A DNA stretch of 64,000 bases, taken from IMG/VR virus record IMGVR_UViG_3300025121_000282, positions 1 to 64,000 of that record. One strand, given 5' to 3'. Shown in pieces: positions 18,832-61,984 of this stretch. The notes beneath the pieces are model-generated. The model was not told where the DNA came from. It was given only the letters and a program-made list of their open reading frames with translations, and made no database searches. The translations under genes and the position numbers were made by a program. The stretch's first letter is position 1, and each line of letters begins with the position of its first letter.

Positions 18832-18848
18832 CTATTTGTTGTAAATTT

Positions 18849-28378: not shown

Positions 28379-28709
28379 CATCCAAGAATTAAACAACATC
28401 TTGGCAAGTATAAATGACATGTCTGCCAAGGCCCTAACTTTGTCTAGGGTACTTTTGGCCGAGGCCAAAGCATCTGATGATGCCACTACTGTAATACAAA
28501 CAAATATGTACGTAAGAATGCTGTCTGCAATGTTAAGTGGCTTGTCTAAACTTAGTCGCCACAAAATCTCTCCCATAAATGTACCCAATTATGTAAAAAA
28601 TGCCAGAGACAAAATGTTTTGGGTAGAAGCCAGAAGAATAGCATACAGCAAAAACAAAACTTCTGAAGTAGAAATTGAAAAGATATGGAAGGGGCTGACT
28701 CGTGCCTAA
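28350..28709 (+). CDS. hypothetical helical protein (start possibly ATG at 28371)
   Basis: Fills the gap to the portal gene. Confidence 0.6.
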   Translation: MLRMFCHMSNIQELNNILASINDMSAKALTLSRVLLAEAKASDDATTVIQTNMYVRMLSAMLSGLSKLSRHKISPINVPNYVKNARDKMFWVEARRIAYSKNKTSEVEIEKIWKGLTRA

Positions 28710-31465: not shown

Positions 31466-32032
31466 GTGGAAACACCCGCACCCAATGATGAGTACCATCC
31501 CGATTCCAGAGAATTGGGGAACCATTATAATGTGGGTGATTTTGTAGCTAGACAATTACCTGATGGCGGTATCACTGACGTAGTTGGCGTAATCACCGCC
31601 GTTCTCCGTAAAATTGGATTTGTAGACGTAGAGTTTCCTACAGGAAATGAGCGGATTTCCATTGTAGAAGTGTGGAAAGTACCTAAGGACTCCATATTTT
31701 ATGCCCCCGCTACGCTGAACACTTCCATGGAAACATGGGACACCTCTATGTCTAGATATCTAGATGGGGTTAATTCTGGGTATAGCTACGCTCACCCAAG
31801 AGTTAGCAGTGTTGTTTCGAAGCACATGTTTCGTACATACAGCCCTGTAGTCTCCTTTATTAAAAGGGCTTTCTCAGCGGGGCTTTCTTCAAAACAGATA
31901 ACTGATGTGCTTGGGCGTGTTTTACCTTCCAATTCATTTGTTGAAATGCAAGAATTGGTCGCACACGTCCATGGCGAAGTCTTTAGAAGCAAATTGCCTT
32001 TACTCCAAATGGATAATATAACGGTGAGTTAA
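31466..32032 (+). CDS. hypothetical head-module protein with SH3/KOW-like N-terminal fold
   Basis: 'VGDFVAR...GVITAV...VDVEFP'; coupled to the protease gene. Confidence 0.55.
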   Translation: METPAPNDEYHPDSRELGNHYNVGDFVARQLPDGGITDVVGVITAVLRKIGFVDVEFPTGNERISIVEVWKVPKDSIFYAPATLNTSMETWDTSMSRYLDGVNSGYSYAHPRVSSVVSKHMFRTYSPVVSFIKRAFSAGLSSKQITDVLGRVLPSNSFVEMQELVAHVHGEVFRSKLPLLQMDNITVS

Positions 32033-33498
32033 TGGGGTTTATACGAACGGCTGAAGCTGCTGTCATACACACGGGCTGGACTCGTGAGCAGTGGGGTCGT
32101 ATTCGTGACGAGGCAAAAGACCAGGGCGGCAATGACCGTTTGGCCTCCGTTAATGAAGAATTTAGGCACTTTGACCCTAGCAAGTATTTGTTATCTCATC
32201 TAACAATAATGTGTTCTGTTGATGTGGAAGAGTCTCCACTACCGTTAGGTAAATTCAACTCTTCAAAAATAAAGTCTTCTTCGCTAACTAAGTTTCTACC
32301 CGGCTACGGCATAACTAATCGCAATTTCTCAGATTTTTTAGTTAAGCCTGAACACTCTAAGTACGTGAATGGCAACGGTGACTGTTGGGAACGGAAGCTT
32401 TTACTCTCTGCGTACAAGACCTTTATAGGCGGGGCAAACTATTATGAACACTTACAGGTCCCGGAATTAAATAAGGGCATAATAGTAGATGCTGTCGCTC
32501 GCGATGTCGGGGACACAATTTACATCGACCTGTTGAAAGCAACTGATCGTAAGCACACATATATAACAGAAGACCTTGAGTCGGATGTGCTTAATACAGC
32601 AAGTATGGGGTGTAACGCTTCCTTTGCTATTTGTACTAGATGTGGAAACGTTGCTATAGAAGACACGGACGTCTGTGATTGCGTGTCTCAGGGCTATAAG
32701 CTCAGTTATTACACTGACAACGACATTCGCAGGATCGTGGCTGAGCTAATAGGCCACTGGTCCGACCCCAATTCTTGTGTATTTTTTGAGTCGTCATGGG
32801 TTCGCAATCCAGCCTTTAAAGGCGCTGTAAAACGCAAAATTTTGACCCCACTTGAGGTAAACTCCTCCTCTGGTGTCCCTATCACATTTCCCGAACTAAG
32901 GGTAGCCTCTTTAACGGCCACTCGGTCGGCCCGAGTTGCTAACTTAATGTGGCCCCTACTTGTTGGAAATGTTATGGCCGATGGTACTCCTCAAAAAGGA
33001 CAAGACACTCGGCCCGATGCTCTTAAAAAGTTATACCCACAAAAAACTGCCCCTCCTGCTGAACCCGTTGTGGAGGAGCCTGAGGAATCAGACCCATCCA
33101 CTAAAGAGGAACCAGCACCTCCTCCTGAAGATATTGCCCCGCAGCAGGAGGAGTCTGTAGACCCTCCTGTGGCTGAGCCAGAGCCAGAGCCTGTTGAAGA
33201 CAGGTCCCCCGTTGAGTTGGACATACAGGATGCCAAAGACGCTCTTCGTCAGACGCTCCTGGAGCAGGTTGTAGACGAACTCACAGACAAAAATAAAAAA
33301 GAGTACGTCCCTGATCCTAACCAAGATAACAATCTGTTTGCTACTGTAGCATTGAAGCACATAAATCGTGGTAGAGTAGCCTCAGTTTTGTTTAAATCTG
33401 AAAATGATGTGCATACCACTAAGTACATACAAGCCTTAGCATCAAAGATTGGTGCAGTGCACACCTCCAGACAACCGTCTGGAATTAGACGCCCGTGA
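32032..33498 (+). CDS. prohead (maturation) protease, HK97/herpes assemblin-like, with zinc-ribbon insert and acidic Pro-rich tail
   Basis: His 'YYEH', Ser 'TASMGC', 'ICTRCGN..CDC' insert and 'FESSWVRNPAF' (ExSxVxxPA-type motif). Position before the scaffold and capsid genes. Confidence 0.78.
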   Translation: MGFIRTAEAAVIHTGWTREQWGRIRDEAKDQGGNDRLASVNEEFRHFDPSKYLLSHLTIMCSVDVEESPLPLGKFNSSKIKSSSLTKFLPGYGITNRNFSDFLVKPEHSKYVNGNGDCWERKLLLSAYKTFIGGANYYEHLQVPELNKGIIVDAVARDVGDTIYIDLLKATDRKHTYITEDLESDVLNTASMGCNASFAICTRCGNVAIEDTDVCDCVSQGYKLSYYTDNDIRRIVAELIGHWSDPNSCVFFESSWVRNPAFKGAVKRKILTPLEVNSSSGVPITFPELRVASLTATRSARVANLMWPLLVGNVMADGTPQKGQDTRPDALKKLYPQKTAPPAEPVVEEPEESDPSTKEEPAPPPEDIAPQQEESVDPPVAEPEPEPVEDRSPVELDIQDAKDALRQTLLEQVVDELTDKNKKEYVPDPNQDNNLFATVALKHINRGRVASVLFKSENDVHTTKYIQALASKIGAVHTSRQPSGIRRP

Positions 33499-33515: not shown

Positions 33516-34454
33516 ATGTCTGATCGTAATCGTTCCACCTGGAGCCGGGCGGCTGCAACCAATCGTCAGGCCGACCCGTTCACAATGAACCAGACTCGCG
33601 TTCAGCCCAGTGAGGATGCCTATGCAAATGGGGACCCGTCAACTTGGGGTGAAGATGTGGACCACAGCAACATGTGGAAGAATGAGACACGTAATGAGAT
33701 CGGCCAGCCTGTGCCGCACTCTAACGTGATAGATTCCGCGCTGCAGGTAGAGGAAGCTGCCCGTGTTGCTGCCCAGAAAGCGGCAACAGCGGCAACTACT
33801 CCTCCCCCCGTAGACCCCACCATTTTTCAGTATCACCTGAAGAGAGCAAAGCTCGCAACTATGATTGCAGAGTCTATGCTTCCTGGTGGCACCTCCGACG
33901 AGGTTGTTGTGGCCTCAGCCGGACATCTGATGTACCTCCCGGACACGGCTCTTGCAGGGCTGAGAGAAGTTCAGCGTAATGCTGGTCTGGTTAAGTATGC
34001 CAAGGAAGAGGCACCCGCTCCCGAGGCTCCCGCTCCCGAGGTTGTGGCACCCGCTCCCGAGGCTCCCGCTCCTGTGAATGCCTCAATGGACTTTGACGCA
34101 GAATTAGAAGCAGCACTTTTTGCTGGTACAGAAGAAGGTCAGGGCGGAGATAATGGTATAGAACTGCCCTCTTGTGATCTTGGCCTTGAAGACCCGGCCG
34201 AGGGTGTAGACCCAATTATAGCAGCACTGTTTGAGCAGGCACTACCCGCCCCCGTAGTGCGTGCGGCCTCGGTTACTCGGACAGCTTCCCAACAGCCCCA
34301 GGCCCCTGCTACGCCGCAGCGGCTGGGTGCGGCGCCCAGAGCGAGAATGGCCTCTGGGGACGCAAACAGAGCGTCAGCTGACCTTTCGGCCCTTTGGAGT
34401 TCAGAGCCCGACGTGTCAGCCCACTTTGGGACCCCCATCAGCATCAAAGACTAA
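33516..34454 (+). CDS. probable capsid scaffolding protein
   Basis: Ala/Pro/Glu-rich low-complexity protein between the protease and the decoration/capsid genes; strong GGAG ribosome-binding site. Confidence 0.6.
   Translation: MSDRNRSTWSRAAATNRQADPFTMNQTRVQPSEDAYANGDPSTWGEDVDHSNMWKNETRNEIGQPVPHSNVIDSALQVEEAARVAAQKAATAATTPPPVDPTIFQYHLKRAKLATMIAESMLPGGTSDEVVVASAGHLMYLPDTALAGLREVQRNAGLVKYAKEEAPAPEAPAPEVVAPAPEAPAPVNASMDFDAELEAALFAGTEEGQGGDNGIELPSCDLGLEDPAEGVDPIIAALFEQALPAPVVRAASVTRTASQQPQAPATPQRLGAAPRARMASGDANRASADLSALWSSEPDVSAHFGTPISIKD
34011..34072 (+). repeat. 26-bp direct repeat (period 36) encoding APAPEAPAP
   Basis: gcacccgctcccgaggctcccgctcc at 34011-34036 and 34047-34072. Confidence 0.9.
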
Positions 34455-34477
34455 ATAGAACTCAATCATAGCTAGCA

Positions 34478-34526
34478 GCTGAGGCCAACTTTCCGTAACA
34501 AGGAAGTTGGCCTCAGCCGTATTTGG
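34478..34526 (+). terminator. GC-rich hairpin with GTATTTG tail after the scaffold gene
   Basis: Perfect 14-bp inverted repeat gctgaggccaactt (34478-34491) / aagttggcctcagc (34504-34517), followed by cgtatttgg. Confidence 0.65.
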
Positions 34527-34618
34527 ATATCAAAGTTGGCCCAAACCTCGTTAAACCTTAAATCAAATGTTAGGTGTTAGGTGTTCATACCGTACTTGTA
34601 GTTTAAGGAGAATCAAAA

Positions 34619-35239
34619 ATGGCAGGTCAGTCTAATGCTGATTTCAAGGGAAGCAGCGATCGACTTCGAATTTTGTATCGAGGCCACTCGAATTCTAGTT
34701 CGAAGCTAACGGAAGATGCTTACACTAACACCAACCCTCCGATTGCGGCGCTTGCTGGAGTTGCCAGCAGCACCCTGACCGGAATCACCAAGACTGGTGT
34801 TCTTGGCTCCTCGGTGGCTGTCACCCGTCCGGATGCTGGTGGTGGCTACATTGGTGGCCCTCCGTCAAATGAGGCTCTCGAAGGCAACTTCCGCCCCCTC
34901 GGTCTCTTCCGTCGTGACGCCAATGGCCTCCCGAATGAGAACGACCCGGGCGTTGCATCGGAAAAGACTGCTTACCTCCACGGCGGTGGCCAGTATGGAT
35001 GCCAGTTGTACGAATCCAAGATTCTAAACACTGGCGCCGCACTTTCGCCGTCTTGGACCAGTGGTGTTCTGGTTTATTGCTCCCGCAATGGTCTCATCAC
35101 CACGCTGGACAACGCCAACAACACCCTGGAGCGGGTTGCTGCTCACAGCATGTCTCCTGCCACTGGCACCGTGATGGGCGTGGTTCTTATGGGCCCGACT
35201 TCGGCAATTGCTGAGGTTACGCTCGACCTTCACGTTTAA
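34619..35239 (+). CDS. putative head decoration/cement protein (paralogue 1)
   Basis: Gly-rich beta protein upstream of the capsid gene with an AAGGAG ribosome-binding site; clearly homologous to the next ORF. Confidence 0.6.
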   Translation: MAGQSNADFKGSSDRLRILYRGHSNSSSKLTEDAYTNTNPPIAALAGVASSTLTGITKTGVLGSSVAVTRPDAGGGYIGGPPSNEALEGNFRPLGLFRRDANGLPNENDPGVASEKTAYLHGGGQYGCQLYESKILNTGAALSPSWTSGVLVYCSRNGLITTLDNANNTLERVAAHSMSPATGTVMGVVLMGPTSAIAEVTLDLHV

Positions 35240-35250
35240 TTGGAGGTCAC

Positions 35251-36036
35251 ATGAGCTACTTTGGAATCTCAAATCAGGATTTTAAGGGGCTAGCCGGTCG
35301 GCTTCGCATCCTTTATCGGGGCCATGGCAACTGCATGGCAGTCCTGGTGGATGACGCCTACACCCAGGCTAACCCGGGTCAGGCCATCGTATCAGATGAA
35401 GCCACCCCCACTTCCAGCACCTTGACGGGTGTTACGAAGCGTGGTGTGCTTTCTGGTTCGGTAGCTTTCACTCGTCCTTCCACATCAGGCAACGTGGCTG
35501 TGGATAACATGGTAGGTGGCCCTCGTCGTCGTGGTGGTTCCAGCATCGGGGCCGCTAACGCTGAACAGGCCGTAGATGGCACCAACGCCCACGCAGAAGA
35601 TGCACGGACGCACGTAATTGGCCTGTTTATCAACGATGCAATGGGCAACCAGAGCTTCGACAATCAGGCAGGCGTTGCATCGGGTAAGATTGCGTATCTT
35701 TCTGGTCCCGTTGGGTCGGTGGGCGTCCAGGTCTACGAGACCCGGCAGCAAATTGACTGGGCCCGTGGCGGGGCTGGGGCGGCTGTCTCTTGGGGCAGTG
35801 GTCAGTATGTGTACGGGTCTATAAACGGACTTGTCACCAACCTTGTTCGTGATGCTCTGGAGTCCTATTCCACTGGCGTACTGAATGATGCCGGTAATGG
35901 ACTTACTGATGCAGCCGGTGGAGCAGTGGCCGCTCCGTCAGTGTCCATCATGGGAACCACTAAGTTCGGGCCTACTGCGGCTTTGCCAGAGGTCTGTTTT
36001 GACATGCGCTTGTTCAAGTACCGTACGGTCGCTTAA
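35251..36036 (+). CDS. putative head decoration/cement protein (paralogue 2)
   Basis: Shares 'DFKG...RLRILYRGH', 'STLTG(I/V)TK.GVL' and 'GVAS.K.AYL' with 34619..35239; GGAGG ribosome-binding site. Confidence 0.6.
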   Translation: MSYFGISNQDFKGLAGRLRILYRGHGNCMAVLVDDAYTQANPGQAIVSDEATPTSSTLTGVTKRGVLSGSVAFTRPSTSGNVAVDNMVGGPRRRGGSSIGAANAEQAVDGTNAHAEDARTHVIGLFINDAMGNQSFDNQAGVASGKIAYLSGPVGSVGVQVYETRQQIDWARGGAGAAVSWGSGQYVYGSINGLVTNLVRDALESYSTGVLNDAGNGLTDAAGGAVAAPSVSIMGTTKFGPTAALPEVCFDMRLFKYRTVA

Positions 36037-36061
36037 TCTTAATCAGTAGAGGTAAAAGAAA

Positions 36062-36937
36062 ATGTCAGTAAGTAACGCAGTGAAGCAGCAGAAGATTGCT
36101 GAACTCATTGGATCTCAGGGCGGCCGTGACATTATCGCCCGTTCAATGATTCAGCCCCTTCGGTCCCGTCGTGACTATTTCGCTGTAGGGCGTAAGTCAC
36201 TCCACGTCGAGCAGCTTCCCGATGGTGCGCTCCCGATTTATGACAAGGATGTGGACGTCGTCGCCTACATCGTGTCGGAAGAGGGTGATAACATCGTTGC
36301 TGTGCAGAAGCCTCGCCGGGTTCATTTCCCGACCTTCGAGATTGCTGCCAACCCTGAGATTCCCCTGTCTCAGATCCGCCAGCGCCGGTTCGACGTGATC
36401 GACCGGTCGCAGGACGCGGCCAGAAGCCAGATTCAGGCTGCTGAAGACCAGCGGTACTTTGCTACCCTGGATTCGGTTGCTGTTGACGGCTACGACAATG
36501 TGTCGGGCTCGGCTGCACGTGACGTTCAGGTCATTGCTCCCATCTCCCCCAGCGTTCTTGCTGAGGCCTTCTCGGAGATTGAGCAGAACGACCTCCAGGT
36601 CAGCCGGATGTTCTTCAATGCGAAGGACTACAGCGACGTCCGCAAGTTCGGCAGAGACATCCTGGACATCGAGTCCCAGGCCGTCCTGCTGAAGACCGGT
36701 CTGATGGCGCAGCTTTGGGGCGCGCAGATCATGATCAGCCGACTGGTCCCCCAGGGCTTCGTTTATATCGTCTGCGAGCCGCTGTACTTGGGGAGAATGC
36801 CAGTACGCACAGAACTCACCGTAATATCCGCTGATGACCCTAGACGCCGTATGATAGGCTTCTCGGTCTTCGAAGAGATTGGCATTGGCGTGTATAACCC
36901 CGCTGGCGTCACCCGTCTCGTGGTACAGCGCGGTTAA
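36062..36937 (+). CDS. major capsid protein (HK97-like fold, no delta domain)
   Basis: 291 aa with the strongest C/G-ending codon bias in the window; 'VEQLPDGALPIYDKD' and 'FPTFEIAANPEI' resemble large-phage capsid proteins. Last gene of the head operon, followed by a hairpin. Confidence 0.8.
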   Translation: MSVSNAVKQQKIAELIGSQGGRDIIARSMIQPLRSRRDYFAVGRKSLHVEQLPDGALPIYDKDVDVVAYIVSEEGDNIVAVQKPRRVHFPTFEIAANPEIPLSQIRQRRFDVIDRSQDAARSQIQAAEDQRYFATLDSVAVDGYDNVSGSAARDVQVIAPISPSVLAEAFSEIEQNDLQVSRMFFNAKDYSDVRKFGRDILDIESQAVLLKTGLMAQLWGAQIMISRLVPQGFVYIVCEPLYLGRMPVRTELTVISADDPRRRMIGFSVFEEIGIGVYNPAGVTRLVVQRG

Positions 36938-36971: not shown

Positions 36972-37018
36972 ATCAACCCGAGGAGCCCGTTAAAGTTCCT
37001 CGGGTTGATGTGTATTTG
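36972..37018 (+). terminator. hairpin with GTATTTG tail after the capsid gene
   Basis: 13-bp inverted repeat atcaacccgagga (36972-36984) / tcctcgggttgat (36997-37009), followed by gtgtatttgg. Confidence 0.7.
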
Positions 37019-37315: not shown

Positions 37316-40189
37316 ATGACTGATTACCAACAATTGTTAATTGCTGCAGGCATTACTCCGGGTACTATCCATGAACTGTACCTAAAGCACACAGATGTGG
37401 AATTGGCAGCCCAGGCTTCTGTGTTTGACCAGATAGTCCCGGAACATGTGGTGGCTTATTGGCGTAAAAAATGGGGCGTGAAGACTCTAACCTTTCGTCA
37501 GCGTAGAGACCTGGGCAAAGGTATACCAGACATTTCTGGACTCACTAAAGAGAAGTTTCTGGAGTTACATACCAATTTTGGAGACACTCAAATTGCCAAA
37601 ATTTATAACATCAGTAAACAGGGTATAGCCAAGCTTAGACAGCGATATGGCATTGCAGCCGTCAGTTATGAGAAGAGAATTAACCCAACAGACGAACTTA
37701 CTGATTTTCAGAAAGCCGTAATTATTGGAACATCTTTGGGAGATGGCCACATTACTGCGTCAGGATGTTTAAAGTTAGATCACTCTGCGGCTCAAATGAA
37801 TTACATCAAATTCAAACACGGTGTAGTTGCAAATATTTCTAAACGATTGCAATACTTTGAAGGAGATAGATTTAGAGAATACTTGACTTATGGGTTCACT
37901 TTCGTGACCTCTCCACACTCATGGGTAAAGGAGCTTCGTTCTATTTTGTACCCAGATGGAATCAAAGTTTTTCCATTGGATGTAATTGCTAGTTTGAAGC
38001 CTGTCTCTTTAGCTATGTGGTATTTTGACGATGGTCACTATGAAGACTATCCTAGTATTGCGATGGGACTGGCTACTTTGACTGATGTAGACAACGCTAT
38101 TGTTGGATTAGACACAGCCTTTGGTCTTAAAACGTATCTTTCTCCACGATCTTTACCCAATTGCCATGTTCTTCAGTTCAGAGCAGAGTCTAGTGATAGA
38201 CTATTTGAGTTAGTAGCTGAGTTTGCTACTCCAGATGTTGCCCACAAGATCCCTAAAAAATTTTGGCCTATTAAAATCGACTTACCTAAATACAAGGTTA
38301 CCAGAGAGGAGCTTCAGGTATCTAATGACCTGCAGAAGAAGTCTAAGTCTTGGCTCACAATGACTGAGGCAGAACAAGCAGAGCACACAAATAACGTTTT
38401 TCTTGGGTGGAGAGAAGTTGGTTTTCCTTTTCAGACTCCTAAATCAGAAGAGCTTCAAACCATCGTTGGTTTAGAAGACTATCAGATTTTAGACGAAGAT
38501 ACGATCAAAGCTTGCCAAGTTGGGCAAAGTATATGTCAAGCTTTCATGCCCCACATTTGGGGTCAAAAACCCATTGATTCTACTTACTCTATTAAAGAGA
38601 TTTTTGATGATGATCACATGTTTAAAACCGTTATTGTCAAATCTTTAAATGAAAAGAAGTCTGTTACAGCTGGTGCAATTAGAAGTTCTTTGCGTTCATA
38701 TCGCCGTTCAGGCTTATACAATTTTCGCCCAGCAGCTGCCCGTGTGTTGGTAGATAAGTATTGCGTTTCTGGCGGTACTGTATTTGACCCCTGTGCAGGG
38801 TGGGGTGGCAGACTTTTAGGTGTATTGCTATCTGAACAGAGGGTCAATTATGTGGCCTGTGAGCCTAGCTCTGCTACTTTTAATGGTTTAAATGAACTGA
38901 CCAATTGGTTGCAAGAGCACGGGGTAAATGCCAACAATCGCGTTCATTTGCACAACACCCCAATAGAGGACTTCATAGTTCCGGATGGCATAGACCTTAT
39001 TCTGACCTCCCCTCCATACTGGAAAAAAGAAATTTATTCAGACGAACCAACCCAATCTAGTATTAGGTATACTACTTATTCTGACTGGTTGGATCGATTT
39101 TTGAAACCGTTGATTGAGAATTCTTGGAAGAAACTCAATGCTGGTGGCCACATGATTTTGAATGTAGACGATTTTAATTTAAATAAGGAAACTTACAACT
39201 TAGTAGAGGATACTCAACGAATTGCGACTCAAGTTGGGTGCGGCTCTCCAATATCAATTTTTAAATATGACATGGCTTCTTATGGTGTAGAAAATTTTGA
39301 GTCGGTTTTAATATGGCAGAAAGAATCTGGGGTTGTACTTCCATTCCATACTAGACCTAAAGTCAAGTGTCAGCACTGTGGTGGTGATTTTGAAGCTAGA
39401 GCCGGCAAACAATTTTGCTCTACTTTGTGTCGAGTAAAAGGACATCGTCATAATTCTAAATTGCAATCTGACACAGCCAAATTTTGGGCATTGGACGAGT
39501 ATACCCGTTCTATTACAGATAAGTGTAGGTCTTGTGGATTTTATAAACTAAAATCTAATCTTTTGGGTCATGTATGTTCTGACTGTTCTGTTTTACCTCA
39601 TAACCCCAAGAAAATTTGCAAATTTTGTTCAAACCCGTTTCAAGCCGAAAATCTTACTCATCAATACTGTACTGAAGCCTGTTATAAAAAATACCGCAGA
39701 CGTGAATATCGAAAAACAGTTCCTGCTAAAACAACTCGCACAGCCAAATGTCAAATTTGTGAGAACGAATGGGAAGTCCCAGCAACAGGTGGGTGGCCTA
39801 CTAAATGTGATCAGTGTAAGAATCAATCTGATTTAGACGATCGGAAACGAGTTTGTCAGTATAGACATTGCAACACTGAATTTGTAGACACCTCTAAGTT
39901 TCAGGGTATGCATTTTTGTTCACCTGAACATCGAGGTGCCGAAAAACGCATACGTTCAGGTGCAACTGCTGATGTGCCCCCTAAGGATCTCGTTATTGGT
40001 CGTCAACGCAGTAAATGTATGCTGTGTAAACAGCCATTTCTGCTTAATGGAACTAAAAATACTCGTTGTGATGATTGTAAGGTAAAGACCAGAACTAAAC
40101 AGTGTTTGCGGTGTAGCAATCCTTTTATTGATGACAGTGCAAATAACACGTGCAAATTTTGTATTGTTTGCACTAAAATTTCACGTTAA
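37316..40189 (+). CDS. HTH + LAGLIDADG endonuclease + amino-DNA methyltransferase + multiple zinc-finger fusion
   Basis: HTH 'DTQIAKIYNISKQGIAKLR'; LAGLIDADG motifs 'IIGTSLGDG' and 'AMWYFDDG'; MTase 'FDPCAGWGGR' and 'LTSPPY'; about seven CxxC...C(x)xxC motifs at the C-terminus. Confidence 0.85.
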   Translation: MTDYQQLLIAAGITPGTIHELYLKHTDVELAAQASVFDQIVPEHVVAYWRKKWGVKTLTFRQRRDLGKGIPDISGLTKEKFLELHTNFGDTQIAKIYNISKQGIAKLRQRYGIAAVSYEKRINPTDELTDFQKAVIIGTSLGDGHITASGCLKLDHSAAQMNYIKFKHGVVANISKRLQYFEGDRFREYLTYGFTFVTSPHSWVKELRSILYPDGIKVFPLDVIASLKPVSLAMWYFDDGHYEDYPSIAMGLATLTDVDNAIVGLDTAFGLKTYLSPRSLPNCHVLQFRAESSDRLFELVAEFATPDVAHKIPKKFWPIKIDLPKYKVTREELQVSNDLQKKSKSWLTMTEAEQAEHTNNVFLGWREVGFPFQTPKSEELQTIVGLEDYQILDEDTIKACQVGQSICQAFMPHIWGQKPIDSTYSIKEIFDDDHMFKTVIVKSLNEKKSVTAGAIRSSLRSYRRSGLYNFRPAAARVLVDKYCVSGGTVFDPCAGWGGRLLGVLLSEQRVNYVACEPSSATFNGLNELTNWLQEHGVNANNRVHLHNTPIEDFIVPDGIDLILTSPPYWKKEIYSDEPTQSSIRYTTYSDWLDRFLKPLIENSWKKLNAGGHMILNVDDFNLNKETYNLVEDTQRIATQVGCGSPISIFKYDMASYGVENFESVLIWQKESGVVLPFHTRPKVKCQHCGGDFEARAGKQFCSTLCRVKGHRHNSKLQSDTAKFWALDEYTRSITDKCRSCGFYKLKSNLLGHVCSDCSVLPHNPKKICKFCSNPFQAENLTHQYCTEACYKKYRRREYRKTVPAKTTRTAKCQICENEWEVPATGGWPTKCDQCKNQSDLDDRKRVCQYRHCNTEFVDTSKFQGMHFCSPEHRGAEKRIRSGATADVPPKDLVIGRQRSKCMLCKQPFLLNGTKNTRCDDCKVKTRTKQCLRCSNPFIDDSANNTCKFCIVCTKISR

Positions 40190-55303: not shown

Positions 55304-55338
55304 AGATTTTGGTTACTTTTTATGACTTGGTACCTGTA

Positions 55339-55398
55339 CCAACCTGAGGGCAACCAAAGATGTCATTCAAGAAACTTTCTGCTCAACTCCGATCCGCT
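55339..55398 (+). repeat. 5' cassette repeat (UTR plus first 13 codons), copy 1
   Basis: 54 of 60 nt identical (my count) to 61542..61601. Confidence 0.9.
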
Positions 55399-55743
55399 CT
55401 AAAGTTTTATGATATAGCCGAAACAATAGACATGGGGGACATAAGGGTAGACCTGCGAGACCGAGATACATGGTATGGTATAGCTGGGGACTTTAGGGGT
55501 ATAGAAAAATCATGGAAAGATGGCCCTCCTATTTACACCATAGAAGTAGCAGACCGTCTTGATTTGTTATCTGACTACGACAATGAAGATGTGGTATAGC
55601 TGATAAACGAAACGACCGAGACTCTGCGTTTGATGCTTGAGAGCACATACAAAACTATATCTCAAGAAGAGGGGTATCATTTGATCCCATCTCCAGAGAA
55701 AATATTTGAAAGCCAAGACGCCTACATAAAAAGTGGTGTGTGA
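55360..55743 (+). pseudogene. KLSAQLRSA-leader protein interrupted by an in-frame TAG at 55597-55599
   Basis: The ORF track stops at 55599, but the frame stays open for 47 more codons to TGA 55741-55743, about 20 nt before the hairpin. Read-through length is 127 aa. Confidence 0.55.
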
Positions 55744-55763
55744 CAAGTAACGCAACCCTGTAA

Positions 55764-55814
55764 CTGAGCCCCAGTTTTGAGTTTTCCTCACTGGGGCTCA
55801 GCTGTATTTGAAAT
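55764..55814 (+). terminator. hairpin with GTATTTG tail, 3' cassette repeat copy 1
   Basis: 12-bp stem ctgagccccagt / actggggctcag; 55765..55814 is 49/50 identical to 61935..61984. Confidence 0.8.
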
Positions 55815-55864
55815 AGCTCTTTATTGGTGTTCGTACACACAAGAAGCAATGGAGATGTACGAGC

Positions 55865-56311
55865 ATGGAAAAGTTGTCTGTACTTTTACTGAAGTCAGTG
55901 CTTGGTGGTGAGTCTAGTGTTCCTAAAAAATACATGCACATTGACTTCAAGCCTCCTATGTCGGTAGCAGATGCCGCCGCCAAAGGGCTTGAATACAGGA
56001 GAAGAGCCTCTCCCTCAAATAAAGGAGGCTTAACTCCTGCAGAAGCTGCTAAGCATGGTCTGGGGTCCGGAGTACAAAGGGCCATAAACTTAAAGAACAG
56101 AGACCGCGTATCACCAGAAGTTATACGCCAGATGGTATCTTTCTTTTCACGTCATGAGAAGAACGCAACCATAGAGCCTGAAAACAAAGAAACCCCTTGG
56201 AACGACAGGGGTTATGTCGCGTGGCTTCTTTGGGGTGGAGACCCGGGCAGGTCCTGGGCTAATAAGGTTATGAACCAAATGCGTGCAGCAGATAATAAAT
56301 ATAACGATTGA
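55865..56311 (+). CDS. conserved phage hypothetical protein (WLLWGGD motif)
   Basis: 'AAAKGLEYRR', 'MVSFFSRHE' and 'GYVAWLLWGGDPG' resemble a widespread small phage protein family; function unknown. Confidence 0.6.
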   Translation: MEKLSVLLLKSVLGGESSVPKKYMHIDFKPPMSVADAAAKGLEYRRRASPSNKGGLTPAEAAKHGLGSGVQRAINLKNRDRVSPEVIRQMVSFFSRHEKNATIEPENKETPWNDRGYVAWLLWGGDPGRSWANKVMNQMRAADNKYND

Positions 56312-56332
56312 CAGTCCGACTTATAATGGGAA

Positions 56333-56360
56333 GTACTCCATAACTAGTAGTGTGGAGTGT
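56333..56360 (+). promoter_or_regulatory. hairpin overlapping the Shine-Dalgarno sequence of the PARP gene
   Basis: actcca (56335-56340) / tggagt (56353-56358); TATAAT at 56322-56327 just upstream. Confidence 0.4.
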
Positions 56361-57910
56361 CTCAAGTGGGAACTATTGCGCACAATGTCGTCCTCAACTT
56401 CACTGATCTGACTGGCGACAAGACCGGCTGTGTAACACTTGGCTCCAATAAGTTCTGGAAGGGCCACGTGGTTGATCACGGAAATGGTACTGCAGACTTC
56501 GAGTGTAAGTGGGGCCCTACAGGAGAGCCTGGGTCAGACAAAGGTAGCAAGAGGGGGATTTCACTTGCTGAGGCCATCAAGATTCTCAATTCGAAAGTGG
56601 CCGAGAAGGAAAAGAAGGGTTACACCCGCCTTCAGGTACGGGATGATGCTGAAGAGGCCGCCAAGCAGGCAGCGAAGGGCATCGTAGCGGCTGTGGCTCC
56701 TGGCATTGCAGCTGCTCCAGCCCCCAAGCGTATTTTCCACCCTGAGGTGGGTAAGCTTCTCTCCACGATTTATGGAGCTACATCTACAGTAGTTCGAGCC
56801 GGTTTGTCATCTCAGGCGGGTGCTACAGCTAGCAATCCCATCGGAAACCTCTCCGATAGCCAACTGGACATTGGTGGGTCGATCTTGGATGAAATCGGAC
56901 TCGCTCTTGAAGCTGAATTCGGTCGAGAGTCCACCAACAACAAAGCCACCACTTTCCCTCTCGCCAAAGACGGCACTCCCAGTCCGAAAGTGATCGACCT
57001 GACCAATCGATTTATGTCCAATGTTCCAAGGGAAATTGGGCGAGAAATGCGTGGTCGTGAGAATCTTCATCGACTGGTCATCTCAAGTTATGAGCGCCTC
57101 CAGGCTCAGCGTGAATTCCTACAACTGTTGAGAGACGCGCATCTGACGCAAGCAGTCTTTCAGGCAGCAGGAGCACAGACTGCCTCCTCTGACAAAGAGG
57201 CAGTCTGGTACGACGGGTTGAATTGTGCCATCGAGCACTTGGACCCAGCAAGTCCCGAATTCCGCAGGGTGGTCGAGATCTTTAGCACTGGCCAGAGTCA
57301 GAAGAACTCAAACTGGTTTCGTAATGGTCGATCCACTCTGCGAGTGGCTAACGTTTTCAAATACTGCAGAAACGGAACGGAGTCCACTTTTAGTGCCTAC
57401 GCCGACAAGGTAGCCCGAAAGCCTGGAGCAGTTGGCAAAATCATGGCATGGCATGGTACGAAAGCCGAAAACACTATCGGGATATCCAAGCAGGGTCTTT
57501 TGATGCCTGAGAATTTGCCGCGGGGTGTGAGTCAAACTGGCAAAGCCTTTGGAAAAGGGATCTACCACGCCCCTAACTTCCTCGTTGCTGGAGTTAAAAC
57601 GGTTGGTCCTTACCCCACTGATGGTACTAATGGTGCGCTCAAGAGCATGAACTATACCGGCATGTCTGGAGCCGCTTATGGTGGCGGGAATGCCGCGGCA
57701 TACATGTTTCTTCAAGAAGTGGCTTTGGGTAAGGCTGATGTCCATTTCTCAGCTTGTTGGGATAAACACCGCCCCAACGACTTCCCGAACAACGACTTTA
57801 TCTTTGCTTGTGGTGCCAAGAACCAAGGCGGTTTTGTCCACGACGAAATTGTGACATTCGACCAGAACGCACAGAAGTTCGCTTATTTACTTCTCATCAA
57901 GAGTGTCTAG
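56357..57910 (+). CDS. PARP-like ADP-ribosyltransferase with WGR, helical regulatory and catalytic domains (start possibly GTG 56366)
   Basis: WGR-like 'SNKFW...CKWGPTG'; regulatory-like 'IGNLSDSQL' and 'DLTNRFMSNVP'; catalytic H-Y-E triad 'WHGT', 'FGKGIYHA', 'HDEIVTFD'. Confidence 0.9.
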   Translation: MSQVGTIAHNVVLNFTDLTGDKTGCVTLGSNKFWKGHVVDHGNGTADFECKWGPTGEPGSDKGSKRGISLAEAIKILNSKVAEKEKKGYTRLQVRDDAEEAAKQAAKGIVAAVAPGIAAAPAPKRIFHPEVGKLLSTIYGATSTVVRAGLSSQAGATASNPIGNLSDSQLDIGGSILDEIGLALEAEFGRESTNNKATTFPLAKDGTPSPKVIDLTNRFMSNVPREIGREMRGRENLHRLVISSYERLQAQREFLQLLRDAHLTQAVFQAAGAQTASSDKEAVWYDGLNCAIEHLDPASPEFRRVVEIFSTGQSQKNSNWFRNGRSTLRVANVFKYCRNGTESTFSAYADKVARKPGAVGKIMAWHGTKAENTIGISKQGLLMPENLPRGVSQTGKAFGKGIYHAPNFLVAGVKTVGPYPTDGTNGALKSMNYTGMSGAAYGGGNAAAYMFLQEVALGKADVHFSACWDKHRPNDFPNNDFIFACGAKNQGGFVHDEIVTFDQNAQKFAYLLLIKSV

Positions 57911-58001
57911 AAAAGCAAACTTCAGTCTTGACAAGTCTCGATTGACCCTACCCCTCTTGTGACGAATAAGTTGTAAGCCCTAACCAACTGGAGTATATAC
58001 T

Positions 58002-58145
58002 ATGGTCATCATCGTTATCCTGCTCGTCTGCTCTGCCCTCGGCTATGCCATGGCGGGAACCCGCAAGAAGGCCCTTGGAGCAATCCTCGGTTTCTTCCTG
58101 GGACCATTCGGTATCCTGATCGCCGCCATTGCGTGCAAGGACTGA
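58002..58145 (+). CDS. 47-aa two-TM membrane protein (not in ORF track)
   Basis: Translated by hand as MVIIVILLVCSALGYAMAGTRKKALGAILGFFLGPFGILIAAIACKD; GGAG ribosome-binding site upstream. Confidence 0.75.
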   Translation: MVIIVILLVCSALGYAMAGTRKKALGAILGFFLGPFGILIAAIACKD

Positions 58146-58149
58146 TGCC

Positions 58150-58470
58150 ATGAGCACTTATTCAAAATGGCTTCTGACCATCTTGTCCGTGGTTGCCGTG
58201 CTTTCGGGCGCTACCTACTTTCATCGCTATAGGAAAGATCACTGCAAGGAACGACTCAAGGCGCAGGCTAGTGAATTCGCCATAATGAATGAGGGGGAGG
58301 TCCGAGCGTGTTATGGTGATCTCACCACGAGTGCGGCCCTGGATACCCATATCAAATCACTCGGGTTGGCTTCTGGGGCTGAGCTGACCTGGAGTGAGAG
58401 GCATGACGCCTTTGTCGCCATTGCCAAGGGTAGGTTCGCAGACGGCAATACGGGAGGACTGGTCAAATGA
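58150..58470 (+). CDS. N-terminally anchored membrane protein
   Basis: MSTYSKWLLTILSVVAVLSGATYF hydrophobic anchor; in frame with track ORF 58129..58470. Confidence 0.6.
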   Translation: MSTYSKWLLTILSVVAVLSGATYFHRYRKDHCKERLKAQASEFAIMNEGEVRACYGDLTTSAALDTHIKSLGLASGAELTWSERHDAFVAIAKGRFADGNTGGLVK

Positions 58471-58646
58471 ACACCCTCCTGAAACTCGCCATGACCTTTC
58501 TTTTTGCTACGGGCTGTGGTCGAGGCACCACGTGTACGAGTGGTGCAGGCTGCTTCGTCGGGCTGTATTGCACATCTTCGGGGTTCTGCCAGGACAATTC
58601 CGAGAATGCACCAAAGGTCATCTACATTTACAAAGACTGCCGCTGA
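58467..58646 (+). CDS. 59-aa Cys-rich putative lipoprotein (not in ORF track)
   Basis: MNTLLKLAMTFLFATG|CGRGTTCTSGAGCFVGLYCTSSGFCQDN...; lipobox-like Cys and an ATGA overlap. Confidence 0.75.
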   Translation: MNTLLKLAMTFLFATGCGRGTTCTSGAGCFVGLYCTSSGFCQDNSENAPKVIYIYKDCR

Positions 58647-58648
58647 AC

Positions 58649-58870
58649 ATGAATACCCTCCTAATCCTCACCTTCATCCTGGCCTGTGGGTGCTCCCGTC
58701 TGGGAGAGGATTGCTTCAACCATTGGGATTGTGACGACAACCAGAGGTGTTCTTTTTCTGGCACCTGTCGTTTGTCTTGGTATCTGGACAGATGTGTGGA
58801 GAAGAATTCCTGCGCCCATGGGCTGTATTGCTCAGACCCAGGCGTCTGCCTGCGGGAACCGAAGGACTGA
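58649..58870 (+). CDS. 73-aa Cys-rich putative lipoprotein
   Basis: MNTLLILTFILACG|CSRLGEDC..C..C..C plus a second C..C..GLYC..C module. Confidence 0.75.
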   Translation: MNTLLILTFILACGCSRLGEDCFNHWDCDDNQRCSFSGTCRLSWYLDRCVEKNSCAHGLYCSDPGVCLREPKD

Positions 58871-58874
58871 TCCC

Positions 58875-59141
58875 ATGAACACCTTCCTCAAATTCCTTCT
58901 GATCGCGTCCCTCATTGCCCCCAGCGCCGTTCAGGCCAAGCCCTGCGGTCGCGGGTACATCGCGGACAACAAGGTCTGTCACAAGGGTGGTGGATACTAC
59001 CTCCCGGCCCCCGCCCGCAAAGTGCCCAAGACCAAGGGACGTCTTGGTTCTGTGTGTGCCAGCAACTCGGAGTGCAAGAAAGGGCTGTACTGTACCACAT
59101 CGGGTTATTGTCAGGAGAACAACCACAAGGTGGCCAAATGA
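58875..59141 (+). CDS. 88-aa secreted Cys-rich protein
   Basis: Signal peptide ending AVQA, then 'KPCGRGYIADNKVCHKG' and 'CASNSECKKGLYCTTSGYC'. Confidence 0.75.
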   Translation: MNTFLKFLLIASLIAPSAVQAKPCGRGYIADNKVCHKGGGYYLPAPARKVPKTKGRLGSVCASNSECKKGLYCTTSGYCQENNHKVAK

Positions 59142-59473
59142 ACACCCTGAATACCATCCTGACAATAACCCTGGTCACTGCCCTCATCTTGCCCAATGCG
59201 GCCGGCGCCAAGCCATGTGGGGATAGTTACATCTCAGACAACGAGACCTGTCACAAAGGCGGGGGCGGGGATGACAGCACCCCGCCTTCTTGGGGAAGTG
59301 TTATCCTTTGGAGTTCAGTGGTTGTTGGGGGCTTGTTTTTCCTGGCCTGGGCCACGAGTAAAAGCGGCAACCCGTCTCACGGTACAGGTCCTGGCCCAAA
59401 TGTGCAGCGGGGCGACTCGTTCGAGTCCTTTGTACAAGACCTCGGCGGGACTGTCACTATCACTCACAAGTGA
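59138..59473 (+). CDS. 111-aa exported, membrane-anchored Cys-motif protein
   Basis: Signal peptide ending AAGA, 'KPCGDSYISDNETCHKG', then a TM helix. Confidence 0.75.
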   Translation: MNTLNTILTITLVTALILPNAAGAKPCGDSYISDNETCHKGGGGDDSTPPSWGSVILWSSVVVGGLFFLAWATSKSGNPSHGTGPGPNVQRGDSFESFVQDLGGTVTITHK

Positions 59474-59480
59474 GGAGAAA

Positions 59481-59702
59481 ATGGCACATAGACCTAACAG
59501 AACCCTGCAAGACACAGATGACCACATTGTTTCAATTGTGGTCGTGATTGTAGCCGTACTATTCGCACTTGGGGTTGGGGTGTATACAGTCTCATCCAGC
59601 ATCGACTGTGACCGCAAGTGTGCACCCAAGCAGGGTGTATTCGCCCGCCAAATCATGTCTTACCAGTGTGTCTGTGTAGACCCAGAAGACATAAAAGAAT
59701 AG
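59481..59702 (+). CDS. 73-aa single-TM protein with Cys4 C-terminal domain
   Basis: GAGGAG ribosome-binding site, TM 'IVSIVVVIVAVLFALGVGVY', then C..C..CxC. Confidence 0.7.
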   Translation: MAHRPNRTLQDTDDHIVSIVVVIVAVLFALGVGVYTVSSSIDCDRKCAPKQGVFARQIMSYQCVCVDPEDIKE

Positions 59703-59725
59703 CCTTTTAATTTGGTTTTGATGTT

Positions 59726-60109
59726 ATGCAAAAACTCTCTACCAAACTCAAAAACATATTCAGAAATAAAATCACTCCTCGGATCAAGACGGAGTTTGCC
59801 AATCGGGCCGAGAAGGCCGGATTGGACGGCAAAGGTCGTTTCCCTACTATAGGCAGGGCCATTAACATCATCAATGGCATCCTTGAAAAGCCCTACACCC
59901 TGAGTGATGGCACCCAAGTCTCCATAGAATTGGACGACATCACCTCTGCGGACCTTTTCGTGAAGAGTCCGGCACCCGCTCTTTCCATCTCGCCTTTAAA
60001 ACTACTGACCCTTTTCTCTCCGGACCCCATTGGCAACTCGATGCTTGCCATGTCCTGGCACTACATCAAAGAGCGGGACAACTACGAGGTCCTGGCCTAC
60101 CTGTCGTAA
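59726..60109 (+). CDS. hypothetical protein with KLS-type N-terminus
   Basis: 127-aa ORF starting MQKLSTKLK. Confidence 0.6.
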   Translation: MQKLSTKLKNIFRNKITPRIKTEFANRAEKAGLDGKGRFPTIGRAINIINGILEKPYTLSDGTQVSIELDDITSADLFVKSPAPALSISPLKLLTLFSPDPIGNSMLAMSWHYIKERDNYEVLAYLS

Positions 60110-60157
60110 TTGACCCGCTATAAACTTATGGTAAATAACTCCGAGGGACTATTATAA

Positions 60158-60592
60158 ATGACCGATAAACTCTCAGATCAACTCCGTTTTGCCATGGCTT
60201 TCTCCCGGAGAGATTTTATAGACAGAGCCCACGAGTACATTGCTGGTGCCATCATAGAGTTTTATAAGGTTAAGCTCGCTAAGAAAAATGGTTTTACTAA
60301 GTGGGTTGTACACTGGGATAACGAGTCTAAGCGGTTGATTGACAGACAACTTGTTCTGCTATTTCTGCACCCCATCCGTGGATTTAAAGACACGAAGTCT
60401 GCGGCTTTGCAGGCGCTTAGTGATATCATGGTTGGCAGCAATGGGTACCAAACTGTCGCCACTAATGATGTAAAGAAGGATTTTAAAGTTCAGGGTCTCC
60501 AGACAGGCCTAGACGAGCAAGACGCCCAAGACTTTAAAAACTGGGTCAGTTTGGCCATTGAGGCTAATCATGACCTGAGGGTCCGAAAATGA
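60158..60592 (+). CDS. KLSxQLRxA-leader protein, tandem paralogue 1
   Basis: MTDKLSDQLRFA; colinear homology to 60589..61008. Confidence 0.8.
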   Translation: MTDKLSDQLRFAMAFSRRDFIDRAHEYIAGAIIEFYKVKLAKKNGFTKWVVHWDNESKRLIDRQLVLLFLHPIRGFKDTKSAALQALSDIMVGSNGYQTVATNDVKKDFKVQGLQTGLDEQDAQDFKNWVSLAIEANHDLRVRK

Positions 60593-61008
60593 CCGATAAA
60601 CTCTCAGACCAACTTCGCTATGCAATGGCTTTCTCCCGTCGCGACTTCATCGACAGAGCCCACGAGTACATCTCAGGTGCTATCAGAGAATTCTATAAAG
60701 CTAAACTGGCCCGTAAAAATGGCCTTACTGAGTGGGTCACCCACTGGGATAACGAGGCAAAGCGTTTGGTAAATGACCAGCTTGCTGCGTTATTCTTGCA
60801 TCCGATTCGAGGTTTTAAAAACAAGAAACAAGCTGCCACTCAGGCATTCGAGGACATCTTTGAAAAAAGTGCGGGGTACCAGAGGATCGCTACTACTACC
60901 GTCAAACGAGACTTTAACGTCACCGGTCTAGTCCACAGCCTCGATGTCAGTGATGCTGATGAGTTTCGAGAGTGGGTATTGTCAGTCATCAGCGAGTCGG
61001 AGGACTAA
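60589..61008 (+). CDS. KLSxQLRxA-leader protein, tandem paralogue 2
   Basis: MTDKLSDQLRYA; shares SRRDFIDRAHEYI, HWDNE and FLHPIRGFK with the upstream gene. Confidence 0.8.
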   Translation: MTDKLSDQLRYAMAFSRRDFIDRAHEYISGAIREFYKAKLARKNGLTEWVTHWDNEAKRLVNDQLAALFLHPIRGFKNKKQAATQAFEDIFEKSAGYQRIATTTVKRDFNVTGLVHSLDVSDADEFREWVLSVISESED

Positions 61009-61013
61009 TTGCA

Positions 61014-61043
61014 ATGACTGATAAACTATCAAAGAGTCACTAG
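61014..61043 (+). pseudogene. truncated third copy or minigene MTDKLSKSH
   Basis: atgactgataaactatca matches the paralogue start, has GGAGG upstream, and stops after 9 codons. Confidence 0.5.
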
Positions 61044-61091
61044 ACAATACCCCCTTAATATGTTTTATTGGCAAAAATAGGAGTTAGTAAA

Positions 61092-61484
61092 ATGAATAAA
61101 CTCTCTGTCCAACTCCGTGAAGCCGCCGCAGACTACAGGTCTTGGTTCATTGTCCTTGACAAGGATGGGGACGAGCCGAAGACTGAGTACAAGGTGAGCG
61201 GGTGGACTACCCTGCTCAGTACCCTGGATGATGCAGCTGACGTGGCTGGTTATGACGCAGACGAGGAAAAGTATACCATTTTTGAGGTACTTCCCACTTC
61301 TGACATTTACCCCCACTCCAAAGCCATTGACCTGGGGGCCACAGGAGAACCGCACGAAGATGGGGCAGAACCTGGAGAATCAGAGTACCCTTCTGGTCAG
61401 CCCATGGCTATGGTAAAAGGCAAGAGCTATAATGTGGTTAAGACATACAAATATGACACAGACAAGAAAAAGTTTGTGAACTAA
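61092..61484 (+). CDS. acidic KLSxQLRxA-leader protein
   Basis: MNKLSVQLREAA; AGGAG ribosome-binding site before ATG 61092 (in frame with track ORF 61068). Confidence 0.75.
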   Translation: MNKLSVQLREAAADYRSWFIVLDKDGDEPKTEYKVSGWTTLLSTLDDAADVAGYDADEEKYTIFEVLPTSDIYPHSKAIDLGATGEPHEDGAEPGESEYPSGQPMAMVKGKSYNVVKTYKYDTDKKKFVN

Positions 61485-61541
61485 ATAGCACTGATCACTG
61501 GTCCCACTTGGTCATTGTTTTATAGGCCTTTGTGATTACAG

Positions 61542-61601
61542 CCAACCTGAGGACAACCAAAGATGTCTTTCAAGAAACTTTCTGCTCAACTTCGTTCTGC
61601 C
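61542..61601 (+). repeat. 5' cassette repeat copy 2
   Basis: 54 of 60 nt identical to 55339..55398. Confidence 0.9.
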
Positions 61602-61910
61602 GCTGGTAGTAAAATTGACGGCTCTATGTGTTTAACCAACGACCACGACATGGGAACCCCAACCAAGTTTGTGGCTTGGTCTTTTGACGCAGCTTTAAAG
61701 TACCTTTTAAAGTCTCCGCGTCACGCTGTTGTGCTAAAAAGCCCCGAGGGTAAGGTTGCAGTATTTTGTGGAGCAAGCGACGGTCCCAGTAATTATTATG
61801 TCTCAACTTTCCCTATGGACGACCCCAACGACGCAGACGGTGGGGACTGGACTGCTCGCAGTGCTCTTCAAGAAGCTTGCGGCATGACTGTTATGTCTTC
61901 TAACACATAA
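61563..61910 (+). CDS. KLSAQLRSA-leader protein
   Basis: Its first 13 residues are identical to those of the 55360 ORF; the remainder is unrelated. Confidence 0.8.
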   Translation: MSFKKLSAQLRSAAGSKIDGSMCLTNDHDMGTPTKFVAWSFDAALKYLLKSPRHAVVLKSPEGKVAVFCGASDGPSNYYVSTFPMDDPNDADGGDWTARSALQEACGMTVMSSNT

Positions 61911-61934
61911 AATCAGTTATTGTTAAGTTGGTGT

Positions 61935-61984
61935 TGAGCCCCAGTTTTGAGTTTTCCTCGCTGGGGCTCAGCTGTATTTGAAAT
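61935..61984 (+). terminator. hairpin with GTATTTG tail, 3' cassette repeat copy 2
   Basis: tgagccccag / ctggggctca stem; 49/50 identical to 55765..55814. Confidence 0.8.

Follow-up and report, generated by a model that had tools for sequence, protein, structure and literature searches.

The stretch of DNA analysed here, referred to as the window, comprises the first 64 kb (positions 1 to 64,000) of the 314,886-bp contig IMGVR_UViG_3300025121_000282 (Ga0208375_1000024). The contig belongs to an uncultivated tailed phage of ~315 kb, known only from groundwater metagenomes. All listed genes lie on one strand, and they include an NAD-ligase, a RecD/Dda-like helicase, a UvsX-like recombinase, a large terminase, a portal, a head protease, a DnaB-type helicase and a family A polymerase. 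The portal maps to 28702-30363, the protease to 32032-33498 and further head-module proteins to 33516-36937. Near the end of the window, two small genes positioned 6.2 kb apart in the same orientation (locus 1 and locus 2, Table 1) are enclosed by a common pair of flanks, and each gene together with its flanks is called a cassette. Between the two copies, 54 of 60 positions are identical in the 5' block (55339-55398 and 61542-61601), which covers an untranslated region (UTR) and the first 13 codons, and 49 of 50 in the 3' block. Each block occurs twice in the window, where none is expected from shuffled sequences. The edges are sharp: in a nucleotide alignment the homology breaks off over a few bases, and the intervening stretches of 366 and 333 nucleotides (nt) align no better than random sequence.

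The same holds for the encoded proteins, which have 13 residues in common (MSFKKLSAQLRSA, hereafter the leader) and are otherwise dissimilar (z=0.37 with the leader removed); no cryptic similarity was detected between the two remaining parts, called bodies or payloads. The homology of the flanks does not extend to the bodies. The initial annotation of this region had reported the same block counts and unrelated middles of roughly 350 nt, and these were borne out by recounts, by shuffling and by independent assemblies. Both loci were found in the same arrangement, at 99.8-99.9% identity, in two independent ENA assemblies (L044 and L045) and in Logan contigs of three runs, and the cassette pair is therefore not an assembly artefact.

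A search for further flanks, as the annotation had proposed, was carried out with exact and degenerate hairpin patterns and a codon-degenerate leader pattern. It gave no copies in IMG/VR or the JGI metagenomes beyond the two of this contig. The proposed comparison between strains was carried out as well. The sampled phage population is nearly clonal, with strains 99.8-99.9% identical, no structural difference and zero payload swaps; when contigs of four runs were mapped for population variants, only the flanks of locus 2 mapped onto locus 1. No near-identical or related phage was found among deposited genomes by DNA similarity, nor in IMG/VR by means of the neighbouring genes, and neither leader nor payload had a tblastn match in 50,697 deposited phage genomes. 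Two sets of hits were rejected. The 25 IMG/VR matches to a 20-nt core are chance matches, being in the wrong frame or away from the start of an open reading frame (ORF). A stem-only pattern searched in GTDB genomes retrieved a hairpin in ten Lentzea genomes (L034-L043, one locus each) carrying the 10/12-nt stem arms of the cassette hairpin; only the stem is in common, and we regard it as unrelated, probably a genus-specific terminator.

Plain duplication of one gene, whose middle has since diverged past recognition so that the payloads are distant homologues, would agree with the number of copies, their spacing and their common orientation. The initial annotation had named this as the outcome that would speak against its proposal, and one half of it holds, there being only two copies; the other half does not, given the z-score of the bodies and the sharp edges, at which identity falls from 92-98% to random within a few bases. 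Furthermore, the family of payload 2 exists without the leader and payload 1 has no relatives. Since the synonymous divergence of the leader is moderate, neutral divergence could not have erased the body. We consider duplication very improbable. A diversity-generating retroelement and an integron cassette were both rejected on anatomy: the middles are not A-mutated repeats but non-homologous, and a scan of neighbouring genes against Pfam and PHROGs gave neither a reverse transcriptase nor an integrase.

The six differences within the 5' block comprise one in the UTR and five at third codon positions. All five of the latter are synonymous, and the peptide is therefore under purifying selection; four of them fall in codons 10-13, adjoining the homology boundary. 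Of 71 noncoding flank positions 2 differ, compared with 5 of 12 third codon positions (Fisher p = 0.0005). The noncoding flanks are conserved above synonymous sites, being either constrained as nucleic acid or homogenised more recently.

A third common patch, TTGGTyAyT(0-2)TTTTAT, is located 40-55 nt 5' of each ATG and is present only at the two loci, with 0 expected. A relaxed form, TTGKT-N(3-7)-TTTATR, occurs at 18836, 37025, 37240, 55309 and 61508, which is five times on the + strand and never on the - strand (0.5 expected), and always 5' of genes or between genes. This makes the motif a candidate phage promoter. No sigma-70-like site was found at or adjoining either block, and no Rfam family matched. 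The 21-nt UTR with the ribosome-binding site appears open, being no more structured than shuffled sequence (z +0.6, locus 1).

At the other end, the hairpins of the two cassettes have GC-rich stems of 9-13 bp and folding energies of -26.4 and -27.1 kcal/mol (z -5.1 and -4.3). They are among the four strongest hairpins of the window. The other two, 34478-34525 (-29.6 kcal/mol) and 36974-37018 (-27.3 kcal/mol), each lie immediately 3' of a head-module gene (gene ends at 34454 and 36937), are followed by GTATTTGG and have stems that differ from those of the cassettes. GTATTTG(G/A) lies within 1-4 nt 3' of all four hairpins, and all four come after a stop codon. The coding strand has 16 GTATTTG sites, and a fold below -25 kcal/mol precedes none of them but these four; even -20 kcal/mol is reached in only 0.5% of background windows. 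The recurrence of hairpin plus GTATTTG after stop codons at four sites points to the 3' block as the probable strong-terminator design of this phage. With a promoter-like motif, a UTR carrying a ribosome-binding site and a terminator-like hairpin, each locus looks like an insulated single-gene unit, so that the expression signals which had been proposed for the flanks do appear to be there.

Table 1. Coordinates of the cassette elements and of genes with the leader motif (positions in the window).
Feature	Position	Strand	Basis
Locus 1 upstream motif TTGGTTACTTTTTAT, candidate promoter element	55309..55323	+	pattern unique to the two loci
Locus 1 conserved 5' UTR with GAGG Shine-Dalgarno sequence	55339..55359	+	20/21 identical to 61542-61562
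Locus 1 leader, codons 1-13, MSFKKLSAQLRSA	55360..55398	+	peptide identical at both loci
Locus 1 ORF, 79 amino acids (aa), ends at TAG; body ORFan	55360..55599	+	no Pfam/PHROG match
In-frame continuation after TAG, 46 codons to TGA 55740-55742	55600..55742	+	sequence reading
Locus 1 3' block: hairpin 55766-55799 and GTATTTG, probable terminator	55765..55814	+	fold and pattern
Weaker motif match MEKLSVLLLKS, phrog_2859-like; membership uncertain	55865..56311	+	starts M-x-KLS-x-x-L
Weaker motif match MQKLSTKLKNI; membership uncertain	59726..60109	+	starts M-x-KLS-x-x-L
Family member starting MTDKLSDQLRFA	60158..60592	+	motif and DNA match
Family member starting MTDKLSDQLRYA	60589..61008	+	tandem paralogue of 60158, body 63% identical
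Family member starting MNKLSVQLREA	61092..61484	+	motif match
Locus 2 upstream motif TTGGTCATTGTTTTAT, candidate promoter element	61508..61523	+	same pattern search
Locus 2 conserved 5' UTR	61542..61562	+	pairs with 55339-55359
Locus 2 ORF, 115 aa: leader helix residues 1-21, alpha/beta body 22-106	61563..61910	+	AlphaFold2 (AF2), relatives
Locus 2 3' block: hairpin 61936-61969 and GTATTTG, probable terminator	61935..61984	+	fold and pattern

The leader is not confined to the two cassettes. Its KLSxQLR core, including the DNA that encodes it, opens five genes (starting at 55360, 60158, 60589, 61092 and 61563), always 2-4 codons after the ATG, and these are the only five copies in the contig. 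The bodies of the five are unrelated except for the tandem pair 60158/60589, and none of the five has a match in Pfam or PHROGs. The extended motif QLRxA is found only in these five proteins and is absent from the head-module proteins of the window, which is a weak test for a prohead-protease cleavage motif, as the specificity of the protease is not established.

For payload 1, only the copy in its own strains (99% identical) was found. The in-frame TAG at 55597-55599 is present in all three assemblies, L044 and L045 included. The TGA that ends the continuation is located 23 nt 5' of the 3' block, a spacing similar to that of the locus 2 stop (25 nt), and the continuation is possibly the original 3' part of the gene. 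Recoding of TAG is unlikely, as TAG ends 6 of the 69 long ORFs and no tRNA was found in the window or the next 9.7 kb. TAG being a normal stop in this genome, the gene is probably nonsense-truncated or genuinely short; read-through is a further possibility.

Payload 2 looked like an ORFan in a word-indexed search, and an exhaustive search gave 45 relatives. These are mostly ~95 aa long, with a start that aligns to residue 22 of the window protein, so that most of them have no leader. They are found in arrays of small co-oriented genes. AF2 models the locus 2 protein with a predicted local distance difference test (pLDDT) score of 84 overall, above 90 in the body and ~60 in the leader helix. 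A fold search with the body in PDB and BFVD gave no significant match, the best PDB hit having E 0.05 and a TM score of 0.41. Four longer relatives (P0004, P0006, P0014 and P0021), 38-49% identical to the body, open with a module of ~40 aa at the position of the leader.

One leaderless member of the payload 2 family (L072, 235-1076) comes directly after a gene with a NADAR domain, which is associated with ADP-ribose processing. Near the window member, 56357-57910 between the cassettes encodes a PARP-like protein in which a WGR domain is combined with PARP regulatory and catalytic domains.

The ~40-aa module, with the consensus MKPSQLAxxLRRIAAKIDNSKxPDRxLVAxDLKKVLAA, was followed by two IMG/VR scans with leader alignments and then by a profile scan of all fetched loci; a word-indexed search restricted to the leader had added one protein only. 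The same module heads P0047, which has a different body, two more genes of the P0047 contig and two adjacent genes of another contig. Module loci occur in uncultivated-phage contigs of 18 to 377 kb, most of them of 180-380 kb, and some genomes have at least four separate sites. Of the 34 unique module proteins, 29 have bodies of sufficient length for comparison, which form 23 clusters with no detectable similarity between them. A recurrent tag on diverse bodies is present in other jumbo phages. The abrupt change seen in the window cassettes recurs within the arrays, where leader DNA has 73-88% identity and the 120 nt after it are at the random level. The module starts at the initiator Met in 29 of 35 occurrences and is C-terminal, internal or tandem in the remaining six. 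Leaders are basic (mean charge +4.7) and bodies acidic (mean -10.7), with an isoelectric point below 5 in 18 of 23. The genes surrounding the arrays are mostly unannotated, and where the context is readable the arrays are not beside head genes.

AF2 predicts with confidence that the module is a hairpin of two helices (pLDDT 86). Helix-loop-helix dimers that form four-helix bundles come nearest to it in structure, but none of these matches is significant (E above 1). Identity with SAP, HeH or LEM domains was rejected, since a PDB profile search gave only designed coiled coils (E > 0.5) and the LEM entries in Foldseek had TM scores of 0.36-0.38. The ESM Atlas scores, below 0.8, were uninformative. 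The module is absent from Pfam, PHROGs and the 50,697 deposited phage genomes, and we regard it as a recurrent, previously undescribed domain family that is widespread on diverse small acidic proteins of uncultivated jumbo phages.

Three observations on individual module genes are recorded separately. A 251-aa protein (L066, 5380-6135) has the module at both termini, and a small protein (L067, 5995-6261) ends in two tandem modules. Genes for tRNA-Pro, tRNA-Asn and tRNA-Trp lie on the opposite strand between and just after the two module-bearing genes of contig L053 (425-498 and 1265-1414).

These results also bear on the possibility that the flanks of the cassettes are mere expression signals copied between genes, with conservation of the peptide as a by-product of selection on the mRNA. 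Translation-initiation regions that are open relative to shuffles, noncoding flanks conserved above synonymous sites and a terminator design common to other genes all agree with this. It does not fit the five coding differences, which are all synonymous, nor the confident fold prediction for the module, nor the fact that across phages the amino acids of the module are kept while leader DNA is only 52-88% identical. We consider this explanation improbable, less so than duplication.

The N-terminus of the locus 2 protein aligns end to end with module positions 1-20 only, that is helix 1, at 5-7 bits (alignment A7). The E-value of this match is 0.004-0.007 among 7 proteins and 0.7 among all 2203 segments, and the link is therefore modest on its own; for the locus 1 leader against the module profile, E is 0.04-0.09. 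The link gains weight because the payload 2 family carries the full module at the same position. The strain variant in L044 and L045 at 55363 changes leader codon 2 from Ser to Pro, and the long module elsewhere has Pro at position 3. Window leader and module are quite probably truly homologous, and the leader looks like a shortened form of the module.

In our interpretation, the two loci belong to a local gene family in the phage's accessory region, and each is an insulated transcription unit with a single gene. Each unit would consist of a promoter-like motif, a 21-nt Shine-Dalgarno UTR, a 13-codon N-terminal tag, a body and a strong terminator made of hairpin plus GTATTTG. Both would derive from one ancestral unit in which the body was replaced by recombination (modular shuffling); this agrees with the UvsX-like recombinase encoded by the phage and with the size of the patches, ~50 nt, which fits the size discussed for gene exchange in work on Promoter(early) Stem-Loop elements (PeSLs) (PMC2839356). 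The tag would probably be helix 1 of the ~40-aa basic helical-hairpin domain, which is found mostly at the N-terminus of unrelated small acidic proteins. Its action would be on the protein level: as a shared docking or addressing element, it would take diverse effector-like bodies to a single partner or place. Taken as a whole, insulated units with exchanged bodies and a protein-level docking tag related to the module are the best explanation, and we hold it to be rather probable.

Several points weigh against this explanation. Across all collections searched, just two units have these flanks, the strains show no swap, and locus 1 with its in-frame TAG may be decaying. The conserved 3' hairpin is peculiar to the window pair and absent from the arrays in other phages, and the roles of terminator and promoter are read from sequence pattern alone. 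The link between leader and module, statistically modest, leans on body homology. Furthermore, the window leader cannot form a hairpin because helix 1 alone is kept, the other family members in the window score nothing on the module profile and are tied to it only by KLSxQLRxA, and the leader family has no recognisable cleavage site. The initial annotation had proposed a plug-in system in which any gene recombined between the flanks gains expression signals and a head-loading tag. A portable protein-level tag on unrelated bodies is supported by the synonymous differences, the leaderless relatives of payload 2 and the 23 body clusters; the exchange itself fared less well, with only two copies and no swaps.

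As to where the tag would bring its bodies, the leading candidate, which we put forward tentatively by analogy with the T4 leader, is procapsid loading for injection. In such a T4-type capsid-targeting system, the tagged proteins would be loaded into the procapsid core, cleaved by the prohead protease and their bodies injected as anti-defence effectors. The gene architecture matches that of the T-even Ip genes, with unrelated small proteins, a common N-terminal leader and a variable region. The module is mostly N-terminal, the cassettes use the strong terminator of two head-module genes, and small acidic bodies fit inhibitor-like proteins. On the other side, no sequence similarity to the T4 leader is seen, QLRxA is in none of the head-module proteins of the window, and the arrays are not beside head genes where their context is readable. 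A module that is also C-terminal, at both ends or in tandem is a misfit for a cleaved N-terminal propeptide. Their acidic nature also sets the bodies apart from the T4 internal proteins, which are basic.

Slightly less likely than capsid targeting, and likewise doubtful, is an oligomerisation or tethering hairpin, which would form helical bundles or bind nucleic acid or acidic surfaces and thereby anchor the acidic bodies in the infected cell, with the virion uninvolved. The confident two-helix prediction agrees with this, as do look-alikes from four-helix bundles (none significant), the strongly positive charge of the module and its tolerance of varied positions and tandem occurrence. However, its structural matches are of a generic kind, and in the window version there is just one helix.

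A more far-reaching version of the docking-tag explanation is possible, and we hold it with reserve. The ~40-aa hairpin would be an undescribed position-tolerant addressing tag that delivers arrays of acidic effectors to the procapsid or to another phage-built compartment or hub. It would resemble the T4 leader in this respect and be unrelated to it, and the window would hold a minimised one-helix version in self-contained exchange units.

Other features of the window were recorded as well. Between the cassettes, 58129-59473 contains four overlapping or adjacent small ORFs with hydrophobic N-termini of the type MNT(L/F)L, which resemble signal peptides or lipoprotein signals. Three of them have a repeated GLYC(T/S)xxGxC motif. 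Conservation at the DNA level covers their ribosome-binding site and first codons (repeat families D8 and D12). The terminase large subunit (24999-28199) is unusually long at 1066 aa, with an extra region matching an unrelated PHROG, and a 957-aa ORF at 37316-40189 combines LAGLIDADG, HNH and methyltransferase-like matches; inteins or inserted homing endonucleases may explain both. The genes after the head protease lie in a G+C island at 34000-36000 (0.56, against about 0.43-0.45 elsewhere), inside which a short Pro/Ala/Glu-rich repeat occupies 34000-34071.

The two cassettes alone are a minor curiosity, with two copies in one genome of which one is possibly decaying. The window is nevertheless a clear natural example of a self-contained gene unit with an exchanged body, and the value of the cassettes is that they point to an undescribed and widespread leader module. 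If the tag is an address label, it would give a sequence handle for effector-like accessory proteins of unculturable jumbo phages, which are mostly ORFans beyond homology search, and it might be put to use as a portable means of directing cargo. The 'one leader, many payloads' logic of T-even internal proteins would then have arisen independently in a very different phage lineage. On a modest reading, the module is still a recurrent domain family missing from Pfam and PHROGs.

Encapsulin cargo-loading peptides are short unstructured terminal motifs, at either terminus, that bring diverse cargo to a shell of the HK97 fold. The module resembles them as a short conserved terminal peptide on diverse proteins at either terminus, but it has no sequence similarity to them, and the present system involves no encapsulin.

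T-even phages have a described capsid-targeting sequence (PMC3012670), and in their internal proteins Ip1-3 only the N-terminal leader, which directs packaging, is in common (PMC12373910). The T-even comparison drawn in the initial annotation is documented by these two papers and is apt as an analogy: here too, unrelated small proteins with a short N-terminal leader are encoded in a variable accessory region, and their bodies are candidates for anti-defence functions. The systems differ in that the window leader has no similarity to the T4 leader (no Pfam or PHROG match; no tblastn match among the 50,697 genomes) and no recognisable protease site, that the tagged bodies are acidic, and that the long module is a predicted folded hairpin of 40 aa which may also be C-terminal or in tandem.

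The PeSLs of T4-type phages are single intergenic composites of a sigma-70 promoter and a stem-loop, present at ~50 per genome (PMC2839356; PMC4122927). The window cassettes resemble them in that ORFans of a plastic region are flanked by conserved regulatory patches of ~50 nt, a terminator stem-loop among them, which possibly provide homology for exchange. Unlike PeSLs, the window cassettes number two in the 314,886-bp contig (hairpin plus GTATTTG four times in 64 kb, with different stems), have no sigma-70-like promoter at the blocks, and have a 5' patch that continues into the coding sequence, where it encodes a conserved peptide. Phage morons are similar in having a single small gene between its own promoter-like motif and its own terminator, but they have no common flanks or N-terminal peptide (PMC2839356). 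The cassettes are closest to the T-even leader and the PeSL cassettes, yet they are members of neither.

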